DNA of 64,000 nt, taken from sequence record MK514281.1; one strand, given 5' to 3'. The position numbers and the translations under genes are program-made. Numbering within the stretch: position 1 is the stretch's first letter; every line of letters begins with the position of its first letter. Below are positions 2,431-11,019 of the stretch, one piece after another. Below the pieces are notes generated by a model. The model saw only the letters and a program-made list of their open reading frames with translations, was not told the DNA's origin and did not search any database.

Positions 2431-2670
2431 ATGACAGATCCCCACCCCATTCTCGCCGCAGCCATCGGAGAGCCCCAGGATGACGATTACTGGGACTTTC
2501 CGGGCGAGACTGTTGTTGGTCACGGTGATCTGATGTACACCAATATCCATAAACCCCAAGCATTATGGAACGGTGTTATTCGGTCACTGCAAAAACGTTT
2601 CCTTACCGAACCACCGAACACCCAAAAGGAACAGCATCATGTCGCACAAGAACCGCGCCCCTCAAATTAA
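2431..2670 (+). CDS. Hypothetical protein
   Basis: taagga RBS, 79 aa. Confidence 0.5.
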   Translation: MTDPHPILAAAIGEPQDDDYWDFPGETVVGHGDLMYTNIHKPQALWNGVIRSLQKRFLTEPPNTQKEQHHVAQEPRPSN

Positions 2671-3433
2671 GTTAACCGGCATCAGAGATGGCGAAAATGA
2701 CGTCTATATCCCCGTGGCTGGATTAGGTATTGCTAATGCCGCTGGAATTACGTACGACCCCACCGCAATTAGTAGTGTGCTGGATAAGCTTCGAACTGAC
2801 AGGCGTTATTTCGATAATTTGCAAAGCCATCCGTATTATCAGCAGAACCTGTTTACGAAATACATTGGTCTGATACCTGATGACGCTGATTATCGCGGCA
2901 CACCTGTTCAACGCCATCCGTTCATGCGTGAGATGGCATTGCGGTTTGGCATCGCGCTGGAATCAGTCAGACTCAACTCCCATCGTCAGACCGGTAAATC
3001 GAATTTCATGTACTACCGCATGGTGCAGTTCCACAACCATTATCTGCAGGAAATGACCGATATAAAGGCAAGCAAGCCGATCCCTATTGACCTTACCCGT
3101 TACCTGAAATTAATAACCGGTAAGGATTTCTGGGAGAAGCCTGGCGTGGGTGCATGGGGTAGTGAGTTTACCGAACTCTATTTTCATAGACACCAGGCAG
3201 GTAGTGGTGGTAAGTCAATGTTCTACAACATGCTGCCGAGAATCAAACTGCATCTGGCTGGTATTCACGCAACTCTCGGTGGTCGACCGTGGATCTACCA
3301 CAATGTTGTCAGTCGTGGTCCTGCAGGTTTCTGGCCAGCCACAATAGAGTACGGTATGGCAAGCAACGGCCCGGCTATGACTGCTCAGCTTAACCGTGAG
3401 CGTATGATCAAACCTAAGAAAGGGAGAGCATAA
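2639..3433 (+). CDS. Hypothetical protein with two P-loop-like peptides
   Basis: ATG at 2639 behind aaagga; contains HRQTGKS and GSGGKS. Confidence 0.6.
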   Translation: MSHKNRAPQIKLTGIRDGENDVYIPVAGLGIANAAGITYDPTAISSVLDKLRTDRRYFDNLQSHPYYQQNLFTKYIGLIPDDADYRGTPVQRHPFMREMALRFGIALESVRLNSHRQTGKSNFMYYRMVQFHNHYLQEMTDIKASKPIPIDLTRYLKLITGKDFWEKPGVGAWGSEFTELYFHRHQAGSGGKSMFYNMLPRIKLHLAGIHATLGGRPWIYHNVVSRGPAGFWPATIEYGMASNGPAMTAQLNRERMIKPKKGRA

Positions 3434-4335
3434 TGGCTTTAGATCAAGAGTATTACGAAAAGGCATTAGCGGTGCTCGCTTCCAAAGGTTTCCCTGATAA
3501 GGAAGCAGACGAAATTGCCACAACCCTTTCTGTCTATCTGCCTATGCGATTCATCAAGGCTGGTGAATGGGCGCTGTTGTCACAGGACGTGACACCCGTT
3601 AACTCGTTGGCGCTCAAGCACCTGGAGTTACTCGAAAGAATTCCTGAGTTAAAGAAGCCCATGATTCTTAAGATGCCGACCGATTTCACCTACACAACCT
3701 ACGGTCAGGAGTATTGTCCAGGTGCCGATGCACCCGTATACAAAACTGGCCCTGATGGTTACACACATCACCCGGTAGGCTGGGAAAGTGGAATTACTGG
3801 TGTGACGGGTATTTCTGGCGAGGATGGTGTTGAAATTGGCGGTGTTAAACCTGTACGTCATGATTTCAAATACGCGTTACCACCCGAGCTCGGTTTACCG
3901 AAGGGTGTAACACCGGAACAAGCTAATTATCTGAAGCTTCATGACCTCAGTGATATCGAGGGGATCAAGCGGGCTTATCCAGATATAGATGAAGAGACTG
4001 CTCAAAGTCTGTCGGCTATGCAGCGTAAGATCGACCAACGTTTAGGGCGTGCACATCGTGAAACACGCAACTCTGAAATGCTTGGTCAGCGGGCTCAGCA
4101 GCAGTATCGTGGTAGCTTGTTTGAGAAGTTCTTGATTGACGAACCGATCGGTGAACCTAAAGGCATGACCGTCAAGATCATGACGCACTCCATTCGCAAC
4201 TTCGGCCACGGGTTACAAATCAGCACACCGTTGTTTGGCCAGAGTCATAAATCTCCAACGGGCCCACAAACTATGCCGGGTCTTGAAAAGGGACGTAATG
4301 GCCACGGCAAGCGTAAAAAGAAAGGTAAACGATGA
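3433..4335 (+). CDS. Hypothetical protein with basic C-terminal tail
   Basis: 300 aa, TAATG coupling, ggaga RBS. Confidence 0.7.
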   Translation: MALDQEYYEKALAVLASKGFPDKEADEIATTLSVYLPMRFIKAGEWALLSQDVTPVNSLALKHLELLERIPELKKPMILKMPTDFTYTTYGQEYCPGADAPVYKTGPDGYTHHPVGWESGITGVTGISGEDGVEIGGVKPVRHDFKYALPPELGLPKGVTPEQANYLKLHDLSDIEGIKRAYPDIDEETAQSLSAMQRKIDQRLGRAHRETRNSEMLGQRAQQQYRGSLFEKFLIDEPIGEPKGMTVKIMTHSIRNFGHGLQISTPLFGQSHKSPTGPQTMPGLEKGRNGHGKRKKKGKR

Positions 4336-5114
4336 TTAACGGTAACACTGAGGGGTCATGGGAATCCCTCCTTAAATGGCATTGGTTTGAAGAGCGGTCA
4401 GCCCGACGGGAGCCAATGCATTTCGTGGTTGTCGATTACGATACGGGTAGTGAAGCCAAGGCGTTTCAGCAGCTGACTGAACTGGCAGAGAAATTGGACT
4501 ATGTCTCTGTTGAACGTATTGCGGCGGCTGACTTCACCCCTGCTCGTACCAGAGCGCTGAACGAGCGTGAAGGCGGGTGGCATTATTGTCATCTGATGGG
4601 GGAGTGTCGGTATGGCCGAGGTGGGATCATCATTGGTGAGGGTGGTGGTTGGACAGGCGCGCACGGTGGTGCCGGTGATGTCGGGATGGCTGCAACCCCT
4701 AATGATGGATCGATACTATACCAAACCGATTGCAATGATCCTGTGGTTGGCAGGCGTAAGTTTAAGACGGTGCGGGATGTCATGGAAAAGGCCAGTCCTT
4801 ACGATTGGCCGGTAGAAATCTGTGTAGTGGGTAACCGGCGTGACCCAGAAGTCGTGGCATTATCCCAAGCTGTGTTCAAATCGGTGGGTAGTCGCAATAT
4901 CAAAGTCACTGCCAAAACCCATCAGGAAATGATGTTTAACCAGCGCACACACCAGGTGGTTAATATCACGCCGGCGAAGTATCAAGCGGAGTTTGAAGCG
5001 GCTTACCAGGAAGCTTACATCAACGCTAACACGGTCTCGACCATGCCGGTACGCCTTGGCCCACGTGGACCGTTGCATTCGGTCTTGGCAACCCAACGCA
5101 AGAAACACTTTTAA
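4332..5114 (+). CDS. Hypothetical protein with a Gly-rich internal segment
   Basis: 260 aa, ATGA coupling. Confidence 0.7.
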   Translation: MINGNTEGSWESLLKWHWFEERSARREPMHFVVVDYDTGSEAKAFQQLTELAEKLDYVSVERIAAADFTPARTRALNEREGGWHYCHLMGECRYGRGGIIIGEGGGWTGAHGGAGDVGMAATPNDGSILYQTDCNDPVVGRRKFKTVRDVMEKASPYDWPVEICVVGNRRDPEVVALSQAVFKSVGSRNIKVTAKTHQEMMFNQRTHQVVNITPAKYQAEFEAAYQEAYINANTVSTMPVRLGPRGPLHSVLATQRKKHF

Positions 5115-7495: not shown

Positions 7496-8056
7496 ATGAT
7501 GTTTGATAAAATTGAAGGATTGGCTGATGTGATCGAGCTGAAGTACGGCTTGCTTGATATCACCTATCACCGCGATAACGACAAAGACCTCTATGTCGAT
7601 GTCTTTTATAAAGACACACGCTTGTCAAGCCGGCGTGATCTAACCGATGCCCTGGACTACGCTTATATCGGTGTGCGGTTGTGTAACCCTCAGTTCGGTG
7701 CCTGGTGTTATGGTGCTGAGCGTGAGTTGGTCATGTCGCATTTAATGGACGCATTGAGAATGGTGGGTAAGCCTGCACCCAGGGCGGTTGAAGACTCACG
7801 GTTAAAGACAGGGATTCATCGTACCATTCAGCTGCTTGCCGAGAACGGTAACCTGCATCCGAAAGAAGATGATATCCGCATCACGATCCATCGTGCGGCG
7901 CGAGTGGACTACGGTTCAACAGATACCATCGAAACAACCATCAGCATGACCAACCACGATATTACTATTAGTAAGCGACGGATTGAGTGTGTTAGTGGTG
8001 AGATGCGGGATTTACAAGCATGGGCGCGTAAGTTATATGCGAGACACTTTGAATAA
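7496..8056 (+). CDS. Hypothetical protein
   Basis: gagga RBS, 186 aa. Confidence 0.65.
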   Translation: MMFDKIEGLADVIELKYGLLDITYHRDNDKDLYVDVFYKDTRLSSRRDLTDALDYAYIGVRLCNPQFGAWCYGAERELVMSHLMDALRMVGKPAPRAVEDSRLKTGIHRTIQLLAENGNLHPKEDDIRITIHRAARVDYGSTDTIETTISMTNHDITISKRRIECVSGEMRDLQAWARKLYARHFE

Positions 8057-8066
8057 CGAGGTAGCT

Positions 8067-8468
8067 ATGGGTAGTGCGTACTGTAAGGTTGTGGCAATCC
8101 ACAGCATCTATGTACACAGTGCAGCGATGGAAGCGGTATCCGCTAAATACAGGAGCTGTTTTCGTTTGGCGTATAACTTCGTGAATGCTACGCAGTTAGC
8201 CCAACAGCTACGGCTTGCCGTGAAGAACAGCGAAATCCTGATTGTCGATACCAGTGACTTTACTCGCCGGGCACTTAACAATCTTAATGAGCAGTTCTAC
8301 TGCATCTATCCGGGTGAGGAACAACATTCCGATATGTCAGTCAAGCATCAGCGTAACTGTCGCATGACGCCTGACTGTATTCATATCGAAATTCAAAACC
8401 TCAGCGACTTTGAGCGCTTAAACTGGGAAGTTCGACCCGATGCAGGGTTAAGGATATCACGCCGTTAG
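8067..8468 (+). CDS. Hypothetical protein
   Basis: ATG at 8067 behind gaggt RBS (ORF-track start 7983 overlaps the upstream gene). Confidence 0.55.
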   Translation: MGSAYCKVVAIHSIYVHSAAMEAVSAKYRSCFRLAYNFVNATQLAQQLRLAVKNSEILIVDTSDFTRRALNNLNEQFYCIYPGEEQHSDMSVKHQRNCRMTPDCIHIEIQNLSDFERLNWEVRPDAGLRISRR

Positions 8469-8533: not shown

Positions 8534-8980
8534 TTATACCAGGCGCTGAGTTAGCTGCGAACTATATTGAATAGCGTGATAGGTCGCAGGTTTCTCAAGC
8601 TGCTCGGTGCAGCGGTAGACCGGGGTCTTCATAAAAGGACAACCGGCATTCATTAATGCCTCACGGTTGCTGGGCGACTCATCAACGCGAATCACCACAT
8701 CCGTGGACTGGAAGCCAAAGACTTCCCGCTTCGTTGCAGTATATTCTGCATCCAGCACCACGATCTTACGGTTGATCACCAGCTTCACGGCCACCGGGTA
8801 TTTGATTACCAGGTCTGACCCTAAGCCCGCCAAGACAAACTTAATGACAAACTTCTTAAGTCCATTTAGCAACTGACTCTCACTGGCCCAACTTTTAACA
8901 ATCTGCAGCATGTGTGTATTTCCACTCATATAAGGGGAAGTTAAGAAAAGCAACCTGAGGGCCCGTCCGTGATCCCTCAT
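8534..8980 (-). CDS. Hypothetical protein, last gene of the minus-strand unit
   Basis: ATG 6 nt after the upstream stop; ends at the bidirectional terminator. Confidence 0.5.
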   Translation of the reverse strand: MRDHGRALRLLFLTSPYMSGNTHMLQIVKSWASESQLLNGLKKFVIKFVLAGLGSDLVIKYPVAVKLVINRKIVVLDAEYTATKREVFGFQSTDVVIRVDESPSNREALMNAGCPFMKTPVYRCTEQLEKPATYHAIQYSSQLTQRLV

Positions 8981-8986
8981 AATGTA

Positions 8987-9451
8987 TTACTTCATACCGT
9001 CCAACTGCTTTTGAAGTTCCTTTAACTGACGGCTTGCATCCGGCGTCTCGGCGTCATGATCTCTGATCGCTTCAATAAACGACTTCCGTTTGCAATAAGG
9101 ATACTTCATCCATTTATCAAATGACAAACCAAATTTGCCCAAGATATCCGCACGCAGATATTCGAGCTCATACTTTCGATACCCAACTAACGCCAGCGAG
9201 TCTTCCTGCTCGACCTGTAAGATTAACGAGAGCGGCGAGGTTTCCACGTTATGGTCAATAATCCCAAACGTGTCATCGTAAAGCTCTGTTAATCGAATTA
9301 GTGGATACTCCCAGTTCTCGGTAAGAAACGTGGGGTTTTCTAACGCGACATCCCAGGCATCGGACCGATCACTTTCGGACAGACCGAAATCCCAATGGAT
9401 TAGATGTCGGCTTGATCGAACGTCTGATTCAGTGTATTCGTCATTAGGGTA
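8987..9451 (-). CDS. C-terminal frame probably reached by -1 frameshift from the 539-aa gene (gpT/T4 gp51-like assembly-chaperone tail); alternatively an 86-aa gene from GTG 9247
   Basis: The frame is open with no ATG/GTG/TTG between the slippery T8 run (9451-9458) and 9247. It reads YPNDEYTESDVRSSRHLIHWDFG...KFGLSFDKWMKYPYCKRKSFIEAIR. Confidence 0.6.
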   Translation of the reverse strand, partial: YPNDEYTESDVRSSRHLIHWDFGLSESDRSDAWDVALENPTFLTENWEYPLIRLTELYDDTFGIIDHNVETSPLSLILQVEQEDSLALVGYRKYELEYLRADILGKFGLSFDKWMKYPYCKRKSFIEAIRDHDAETPDASRQLKELQKQLDGMK

Positions 9452-11019
9452 AAAAAAACCCGTGCTACGTTCAGCGGGGTGTACGCAGGGAAGGTGTTGC
9501 TAACTAGCGGTTGACGCGCCTGGCAGTTCGGGCATTTCCAACGCGGTACTGCGACTACACCGACCGTTACCCGGTTGATGAACTTGTTCAGCTCTTCAAA
9601 GAACGGTTTACGCATATCCGGGGTTGCACTGAATTGCTTCAGCAGCAATGCCACGTCATCGGCCGACTCAACATAGTTGCCATCGTTGAACTCGATCTTA
9701 GTCACCCAGTGGGCGTAACCACGCATGGAGGACAGCGCTGCCTGTTTGTTGATGTGCTGCTCACGCTGCTCACGCGTCATGCTGTCGTTGAAGCTGTCGG
9801 TGATCGCTTGTTGAATACCGTTGATCCAGGCATAACCCGCTGCATTCTTATCTTCGAGTGATGGCACCCGCAGATAGAACTTCACATCTTTCACAGTGAT
9901 GACATTGTCTTTCATCACTTCAAAGCCGGTCTGATAGGCAATGACCTGCTCGACGGTACGGCCGCTGAAGTGAGACATGTGCGCACGCTGGGTTGGTGAC
10001 AGACGATTGTTGTCAATGATCGACAGACGAGAGACGTTAACTTTCGCTGCTTCAACATGCACACACTTCTTCGGATCGGCGGCACAGGCAGTGACCATGT
10101 GGTAGCCAGACTTAAAGCGTGCGCCCAGGTAGGCGTTAGCGATCAGATCGAGATCCTGCTCTTTGATTAACGGCAGCAGGGTTTTCTTATCGGAGACACC
10201 GATGCTGCTGTCAGTGACCATACCCAGCAGGAAGTCAGTCATGTGCTTACGCACCACGACATCCAGGTTGTTAAACACCAGACCGTTGGTACGACGACCG
10301 AGGATCGCTTTCTCAGCCATGATGGCGGTTTGCATATCCACAAACTCATCATCACCGGCAATCAGCAACGTAACCCAGATACCAGAATGTGGCAGCGGCA
10401 GATGGACATAGTCGCCCATGTTCATCACACCACGAGCACGCATCACTGCCTGTGGACCGGTCAGCAGTTTAGTGCCTTCGGTACTGCGCTTCACTGGCGG
10501 GCGAGAAACACCCTGCACTTTGTTGCTGTCAAGCAGAATACCTTGCAGCCACTGCGCGCCATCCTGACGAATGGTCAGATTCAGACCAGAACGGTACGAC
10601 AGGTTGGTGATGGCATTACTGGCCAGGGATAGCCAGATCATCGCTTTATCAGCACCGTACAGACTGACGATCTCTTTTAAGATCTTCTTGTCTTCGGTGT
10701 TGGTGTCGATCTCGTTGATCAGCGCCGTCGCTGCATCGTAATCCTGATGCATGATAGACAGCACACCTTCCGTGCCGACATCCTCCATGGAGTTCAGCTT
10801 TTCAATGATCGGGTTCTGATAGAGCGGATCGAACGCCTGCTCAACGGCTTCAACTTCAGGTGCTTCAGCTTCGCCCTGTTGGCCGGTTTCTGCTGGCTCG
10901 GGATCGGTGCCAATAGTACCAGTAGTCGCCGGACGGCCTGGATCAACTTCAGGAATACCAGAGTGGTTTTCTTCAACAGGCTCTTGCTGTGACAGAATGG
11001 ATGGGTTATCACCGGACAT
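9400..11019 (-). CDS. Conserved phiKZ-like core protein with Cys motifs (CAADPKKC, CPNC); putative baseplate-hub/tail assembly chaperone
   Basis: 539 aa, acidic N-terminus; position between the SF2 helicase and the RNAP beta' fragment matches the phiKZ core order. Confidence 0.6.
   Translation of the reverse strand: MSGDNPSILSQQEPVEENHSGIPEVDPGRPATTGTIGTDPEPAETGQQGEAEAPEVEAVEQAFDPLYQNPIIEKLNSMEDVGTEGVLSIMHQDYDAATALINEIDTNTEDKKILKEIVSLYGADKAMIWLSLASNAITNLSYRSGLNLTIRQDGAQWLQGILLDSNKVQGVSRPPVKRSTEGTKLLTGPQAVMRARGVMNMGDYVHLPLPHSGIWVTLLIAGDDEFVDMQTAIMAEKAILGRRTNGLVFNNLDVVVRKHMTDFLLGMVTDSSIGVSDKKTLLPLIKEQDLDLIANAYLGARFKSGYHMVTACAADPKKCVHVEAAKVNVSRLSIIDNNRLSPTQRAHMSHFSGRTVEQVIAYQTGFEVMKDNVITVKDVKFYLRVPSLEDKNAAGYAWINGIQQAITDSFNDSMTREQREQHINKQAALSSMRGYAHWVTKIEFNDGNYVESADDVALLLKQFSATPDMRKPFFEELNKFINRVTVGVVAVPRWKCPNCQARQPLVSNTFPAYTPLNVARVFFTLMTNTLNQTFDQADI
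9451..9457 (-). other. Candidate -1 ribosomal slippery heptamer T_TTT_TTT
   Basis: 0-frame reads CGG GTT TTT TTT ACC; the -1 frame stays open for 154 codons downstream. Confidence 0.6.

Follow-up and report, generated by a model that had tools for sequence, protein, structure and literature searches.

In the 64,000-nucleotide stretch of DNA analysed here (sequence record MK514281.1; the window in what follows), the minus-strand gene REBECCA_269 is best explained as a case of programmed −1 ribosomal frameshifting, a reading to which we give a probability of roughly 0.8. The gene would thus specify a protein of 539 amino acids (aa) and, through a slip on a thymine run close to its 3′ end, a second form of about 677 aa, both being forms of a probable assembly factor of the baseplate-hub type. 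At 100% identity, the window matches Erwinia phage Rebecca (MK514281.1), a member of the genus Agricanvirus; over this stretch, another 15 records from the genus reach 97.8–99.3%. A tblastn search with the upstream protein matched 221 phage records and placed the gene as phiKZ gp77, 201phi2-1 gp136 and SPN3US gp39; the record of 201phi2-1 gp136 also notes a likeness to EL gp47. Among the nucleus-forming phages the gene is core gene cg18 (Goslar gp081, phiKZ gp077 and RAY gp267), which is listed as 'hypothetical protein' by Prichard et al. (PMC10299810, Table S3).

A sequence-only reading of the window had described the open reading frame, the run of eight T's, the phase of the heptamer, the limits of the −1 frame, its 68 start-less codons and the sizes of the two predicted products (539 and about 677 aa), and every coordinate was confirmed by reading the sequence (Table 1). 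Sixteen sense codons separate the heptamer from the frame-0 stop. A stop 16–17 codons upstream of the T run closes the −1 frame, which then stays open for 154 codons up to the TAA at 8987–8989; by our own arithmetic, random sequence would give a stop-free run of that length with a probability of about 6e-4. The first ATG, GTG or TTG in this frame is the GTG at 9247, leaving 68 codons from the site without a possible start.

Table 1. Coordinates of the features discussed, as positions in the window
Feature	Position	Strand	Remarks
Frame-0 open reading frame, REBECCA_269	9400..11019	minus	539 aa plus stop; orthologue of phiKZ gp77, Goslar gp081 and RAY gp267; core gene cg18
Slippery heptamer T_TTT_TTT in X_XXY_YYZ phase	9451..9457	minus	Codons 522–523 and last base of codon 521; within the T8 run 9451–9458
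−1 frame extension, reachable only from the slip site	8987..9451	minus	154 codons plus TAA; homologous across the family
Dual-coding overlap (last 16 frame-0 codons and stop, also read in −1)	9400..9450	minus	DNA nearly invariant between species
Start-less −1 frame past the frame-0 stop	9248..9399	minus	Evolves as coding; holds invariant residues of the extension family
Annotated REBECCA_268	8987..9247	minus	86 aa, GTG start; read as distal part of the extension, not as a separate gene
Conserved body, residues 150–539	9403..10572	minus	Modelled; fold like predicted T4-type baseplate hub assembly proteins
Cys312, Cys319 and His321, first half of a probable metal-binding site	10057..10086	minus	Both Cys invariant in 45 diverse relatives
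CxxC motif, Cys496 and Cys499	9523..9534	minus	Invariant in 45 diverse relatives; 23 codons before the slip site

Conservation of the proposed slip site in phiKZ-like phages

The comparison covered 87 related loci with 18–100% protein identity, made up of IMG/VR loci (80 surveyed) and named phages. In 75 of the 87, a T_TTT_TTN heptamer lies in phase at one aligned position and is followed by an open −1 frame of about 130–180 further codons; nine more keep an in-phase T_TTY tetramer with the same open −1 frame, and three could not be read. Within the IMG/VR survey, the heptamer was in phase in 67 of the 80 loci, 9–20 codons before the frame-0 stop, with 150–181 further codons in the −1 frame. 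Nine others have five or six T's at the same aligned place, with T_TTY in phase and the −1 frame running 142–170 codons past the frame-0 stop. The remaining four comprise a duplicate of RAY, a locus that runs off its contig and two loci in which the frame could not be resolved.

The 75 heptamer loci represent 70 distinct sequence contexts, in which the last base of the heptamer is T (47), C (21) or G (2) and the base that precedes it is T (42), C (24), A (2) or G (2). The +1 frame, used as a control at the surveyed loci, is mostly open for fewer than 20 codons. The −1 frame is shut 0–4 codons upstream of the site in many loci, and the position of its first start codon varies between 2 and 151 codons past the site. 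The recurrence of the motif goes far beyond chance: elsewhere in the related genes, only one in-phase T_TTT_TT occurs in 28,597 codons, runs of six T's being avoided. The sequence-only reading had proposed recoding for this gene and a check of its conservation across phiKZ-like genomes. The slippery heptamer and the open −1 frame are indeed kept while the starts are scattered, and the support extends to the whole phiKZ-like clade, more broadly than had been proposed.

Close relatives add a finer view. Sixteen Agricanvirus records, sequenced independently, do not differ at the site. In Erwinia phage AH06 (79.5% DNA identity) and in Simmy50, the T run and about 70 following bases are almost invariant amid diverged flanks, which is the pattern predicted by dual coding. 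When the −1 piece alone was searched by tblastn, it matched Salmonella phage SA002, Erwinia phages pEa_SNUABM_37 and pEa_SNUABM_48 and Proteus phage 10 with 40–49% identity, and these matches begin at query residue 1, that is, 51 bases before the end of the upstream gene. Frame 0 reads GCT TTT TTT ACC or GTT TTT TTT ACC in SA002, pEa_SNUABM_37 and Proteus phage 10. The same arrangement was found in four metagenome loci, whose upstream protein is down to 29% identical; several of them have a −1 stop three codons before the site.

The better-known phages follow the same plan. Thus, phiKZ gp77 reads ACT TTT TTT ACT, and its −1 frame of 172 codons takes in a 218-base 'gap' in the annotation and PHIKZ076.4; 201phi2-1 gp136 reads ACT TTT TTT ACG, and its −1 frame of 177 codons includes gp135 (annotated from a TTG); SPN3US gp39 reads GTT TTT TTC GTG, and its −1 frame of 183 codons includes gp40. 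Halocynthia phage JM-2012, Vibrio phage BONAISHI, Klebsiella phage FBKp24 and Serratia phage PCH45 likewise have an in-phase heptamer, with an extension of 149–173 residues. The frame-0 tail varies in length: in PCH45 (locus positions 566–2380) and FBKp24 (locus positions 1201–2916), frame 0 continues for 38–45 codons past the slip site, as opposed to the usual 14–17, making the overlap of the two frames much longer.

An arrangement of this kind could also be produced by a homopolymer sequencing error or by a recent inactivating frameshift in one longer gene, and homopolymer runs are error-prone. The error had been named as a danger by the sequence-only reading itself. However, the same frame relation is present in the 16 Agricanvirus genomes, and divergent loci agree: it recurs in more than 80 loci, down to 18% identity and with runs of 5 to 8 T's. 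A profile search over 1.84 billion representative proteins returned 1,638 family members, and the 150 representatives listed among them are 403–645 aa long with ends that coincide with the end of the profile, which marks the frame-0 stop as a trait of the family. A single-frame (fused) homologue of about 690 aa was not found among 14 and 20 close matches or among these 150, and the frame-0 tail after the slip site is itself conserved. We therefore take sequencing error or decay as already refuted by the comparative data.

Coding in the −1 frame and how it may be reached

The 52 codons of the −1 frame that lie between the frame-0 stop and the first start codon were compared with those of three relatives. 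The differences at codon positions 1/2/3 number 4/7/19, 11/7/29 and 10/9/32, and synonymous changes exceed non-synonymous ones. Judged by these substitutions, the start-less part of the −1 frame is under purifying selection. Nine extension peptides align over their full length, with 8 of the 14 invariant positions falling in the start-less part, and the 52 start-less codons are the best-conserved part of the extension domain. A profile of these nine extensions also aligns with the extensions of phiKZ, 201phi2-1, SPN3US, JM-2012, BONAISHI, FBKp24 and PCH45 (hhalign 98.9%, E value 2e-17). No known relative of the extension domain came out of the Pfam and PDB searches, and it resembles no solved protein.

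All 13 annotated records that were examined keep them apart as separate genes; in Rebecca, REBECCA_268 comes after a 152-base unannotated stretch 3′ of REBECCA_269. In the phiKZ reference, the unannotated 'gap' of 218 bases (locus positions 4180–4397, from gp77 to PHIKZ076.4) is open in the −1 frame of gp77 and continuous with PHIKZ076.4. In RAY and Simmy50, the downstream frame is annotated as a protein of 182 aa (RAY_266, locus positions 2466–3014; SIMMY50_271, locus positions 2975–3523; protein record version.2), starting from an ATG inside the upstream gene, a region that we compared with positions 9459–9514 of the window. In Rebecca, which is about 99% identical to RAY, the RAY-type ATG is cut off by a −1 stop, so that one stretch carries three differing annotations among near-identical phages.

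Taken at face value, these thirteen records describe two separate genes, with the downstream frame (REBECCA_268, PHIKZ076.4, 201phi2-1 gp135 or SPN3US gp40) being translated from an internal or non-canonical start, and in some loci a start codon does occur soon after the frame-0 stop. However, the annotated starts are not conserved, being a mix of ATG, GTG and TTG placed 2 to 151 codons after the site, and it is the 52 Rebecca codons before any start that are best conserved and show the third-position bias. Moreover, followed upstream, the −1 frame is in every case open as far as the slip site and in many cases ends there, and between the two frames we found no promoter-like or terminator-like site beyond chance. 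For these reasons we hold two independent genes to be very improbable.

The slip itself is most likely ribosomal, and the long form is probably the minor species. In the mechanism that we propose, most ribosomes would stay in frame 0 and make the 539-aa protein, whose last 16 residues form part of a predicted terminal helix. Some would slip one base back on U_UUU_UUU, where tRNA-Phe would occupy both the P site and the A site, and read on in the −1 frame; their product, of about 677 aa, would carry the conserved 154-residue domain instead of the end of the helix. In the structure model described below, the slip site coincides with the start of the terminal helix (residues 518–536), and the long form would accordingly lose most of this helix and gain the extension. 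The phage might need the two forms at a fixed ratio to each other, as lambda does with G and GT. Heptamers of the type H_HH.U_UU.Y rank with the most efficient −1 shifters in E. coli, where U_UU.Y takes second place among the tetramers (PMC4066793); these efficiencies fit the preference for T or C at the last position of the heptamer.

No stimulator was found beside the site, in agreement with the sequence-only reading, which had seen none immediately 3′ of it. The 60 bases downstream fold no more stably than controls (z-score −0.54 versus −0.61 for control windows), and the fold of the single downstream sequence is not unusual (z −1.44). Shine–Dalgarno-like motifs are not enriched upstream (7 of 70 sites versus 10 of 70 controls), and Rfam gave no match at the locus. 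A consensus hairpin placed by RNAalifold around the frame-0 stop was the lone structure to emerge; it was rejected as a stimulator, being about 40 nucleotides from the site, with invariant pairs and in a dual-coding region. On the minus strand of Rebecca, a conserved inverted repeat of eight pairs (9385–9413) spans the frame-0 stop some 40 nucleotides past the slip site; its pairs hardly vary and show no covariation, and it may simply reflect dual coding. The slippery sequence would then act without conserved RNA structure or a Shine–Dalgarno-like element, and could for that reason work in many host genera.

A run of T's might alternatively be slippery for the RNA polymerase of phage or host, which would add one U so that part of the mRNAs carry the extension in frame. 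The run counts eight T's in the window and seven or eight in most relatives, and UUUUUUU is under-represented in all frames of enterobacterial genes, possibly through such slippage (PMC4066793). What is kept among the phages, however, is the in-phase heptamer and not the length of the run: the latter ranges from 5 to 8 while the phase is constant, the preceding and last bases vary, and the nine lineages with five or six T's still have the in-phase T_TTY and the open −1 frame. Efficient transcriptional slippage, moreover, requires about nine such bases in a row. Conservation of a heptamer in phase, rather than of a long homopolymer, favours a ribosomal slip, and we consider a transcriptional one improbable.

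Having preferred programmed frameshifting, we acknowledge the points that weigh against it. There is no conserved stimulator, so the efficiency may be low, and a run of 7–8 U's could also give transcriptional slippage. An ATG lies 2 and 14 codons past the site in two loci, and RAY and Simmy50 have a −1-frame ATG upstream of the site, which annotators have used. The long form of about 677 aa is a prediction from the genes, and gp266/gp267 are not mentioned in the text of the mass-spectrometry paper on RAY and Deimos-Minion.

The shared body and its possible role

For the body of the protein, a structure was predicted by AlphaFold for residues 150–539 from 33 sequences of two clades, with a mean predicted local distance difference test score (pLDDT) of 85.7 and a predicted template modelling score of 0.86. 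An earlier model, which drew on 13 close homologues, was discarded for its low quality (pLDDT 47) and meaningless Foldseek matches. A Foldseek comparison of the better model with BFVD ranked the protein's own family first; next came about 15 proteins, each of roughly 250 aa, whose annotations read T4-like baseplate hub assembly protein, hub subunit or hub assembly chaperone. BFVD also showed more distant relatives, 389–475 aa in length. These hub-assembly matches have E values of 9e-7 to 3e-2 and template modelling (TM) scores, by target, of 0.42–0.58, and the targets are themselves predicted structures.

Four cysteines stand out in the sequence. Cys312, Cys319, Cys496 and Cys499 do not vary among 45 diverse relatives, an invariance suggestive of a metal site. 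Unlike their neighbours, the orthologues carry no virion-protein flag in the records of phiKZ and 201phi2-1, and the text of the paper on the Goslar virion structure makes no mention of gp81. On these observations, the protein is probably, with modest confidence, a non-virion assembly factor of the baseplate-hub type, distantly like T4 gp26 and gp51.

Several results count against this assignment. The matches behind it are all to predicted structures; against the PDB, the body model gave no Foldseek match (best E value 0.26, TM score about 0.1). T4 gp26 and gp51 both hit PF12322 (T4_baseplate), with 216 and 178 bits, whereas the protein of the window has no PF12322 match in Pfam and only one of 45 family members touches that profile, at an E value of 0.028. 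In profile–profile comparison with the PF12322 family by hhalign, the body reaches at most 47% (29–47%, over 22–52 columns around the CxxC), and with the single T4 gp26 and gp51 sequences 4–10% probability. The protein matched no Pfam or NCBIfam family, and its PHROG matches have no known function. When the PDB was searched by sequence, with single proteins and with the body and extension profiles, only chance matches resulted, and nothing new came from a word-indexed protein search that used the 45-sequence alignment. The model therefore speaks for a resemblance in fold, and not for membership of PF12322 at the level of sequence.

Thus, the role of tail or baseplate chaperone that the sequence-only reading had assigned to this CxxC protein is upheld in part: the predicted fold matches hub assembly proteins, while the sequence tests are weak. 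Its further suggestion, that a distal motif of the extension resembles gpT or T4 gp51, found no support, as the extension scores at most 1.4% probability against gp51 and gp26 alignments.

Literature matches for 'gp77' proved to be differently numbered genes of other phages and were set aside, and the cg18 orthologue is not mentioned in the main text of the PCH45 transposon-mutagenesis paper or of the phiKZ antisense-oligomer screen.

As to the surroundings, the neighbours of REBECCA_269 are homologues of phiKZ gp78, gp79 and the virion RNA polymerase subunit gp80, and synteny with the gp80 gene is kept. The next gene downstream, REBECCA_267 (8534–8980, minus strand, 148 aa), is annotated 23 codons shorter (378 nucleotides) in RAY and Simmy50; its start may be placed too far upstream, since the PHROG profile covers residues 24–148 only. 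In one metagenomic relative, the genes that flank a conserved block beside the cg18 gene (locus positions 1–1249 and 9484–9629) show weak matches to GIY-YIG and LAGLIDADG homing endonucleases.

Significance and relation to known systems

A full-text literature search on frameshifting in phiKZ, Chimalliviridae, jumbo or nucleus-forming phages found no description of this event, subscription journals being outside its reach, and in this it bears out the sequence-only reading, which had not known of one in phiKZ-like phages. In its most general form, the proposal is that all nucleus-forming phages, and relatives such as JM-2012, produce a large, zinc-binding assembly factor, a distant fold relative of gp26 and gp51, in two forms through a stimulator-free −1 frameshift in cg18. 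We lean towards this general form with slightly better than even confidence.

If true, it would be the first recoding event described for the phiKZ-like family, and would provide a natural example of frameshifting that depends on nothing but the slippery sequence in many host genera. Such wide conservation of a recoding signal would imply that both products are needed and that PHIKZ076.4, 201phi2-1 gp135, SPN3US gp40 and REBECCA_268 are parts of one protein. It would also imply that annotation pipelines miss a conserved domain family-wide: in hundreds of genomes, some 150–180 residues would be wrongly recorded as short orphan genes or as non-coding gaps. These phages are heavily studied models of the phage nucleus and candidates for therapy, yet cg18 is still a 'hypothetical protein' (PMC10299810), and the present data would offer a concrete lead on how phiKZ-like phages build the baseplate hub.

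Four known systems help to place the proposed event. First, the E. coli dnaX shift (tau/gamma) truncates its protein and is driven by an upstream Shine–Dalgarno-like element and a downstream stem–loop, whereas the cg18 shift would extend the protein and has no conserved stimulator. The likeness lies in the −1 slip on a near-homopolymeric heptamer, which would give two products in a set ratio (for dnaX, PMC5009743). Second, the cg18 shift is of the extension type, as in the orfA/orfAB genes of insertion sequences, and U_UU.U_UU.C is among the heptamers that these elements naturally use (PMC4066793). The proteins are unrelated, however, and the sites in insertion sequences usually come with a hairpin or pseudoknot.

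Third, the modelled fold of the cg18 body resembles the predicted structures of the PF12322 family, to which T4 gp26 and gp51 belong, and CxxC-type Cys motifs are found on both sides; gp51 is annotated as a chaperone in the T4 record. The T4 proteins differ in being 208 and 249 aa long, in having no frameshift and in being encoded within the hub gene cluster, whereas cg18 lies outside such a cluster. T4 gene 26 (locus positions 7803–8429) is also annotated with two products, 26 and a shorter 26′, although not by frameshifting.

Fourth, in lambda G/GT and the tail assembly chaperones of long-tailed phages, a −1 slip occurs near the 3′ end and is conserved over great divergence. The sequence-only reading had called the two cg18 products a G/GT-like pair, and the logic of a shared body and a −1 slip stands. 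As in G/GT, a start-less extension follows a shared body through a slip near the 3′ end, the arrangement is held over great divergence, and the protein is apparently not a component of the virion. Membership of the lambda chaperone family, in contrast, has to be given up: the cg18 body of about 540 aa is some four times too large (about 140 aa in lambda), it matches no chaperone family in Pfam, and its gene adjoins that of the virion RNA polymerase subunit instead of lying between the tube and tape-measure genes. The heptamer here is U_UUU_UUY, and the extension is a domain without known relative. If the two readings hold together, cg18 would link the hub-assembly 'catalysts' of T4 to the two-form logic of lambda G and GT.

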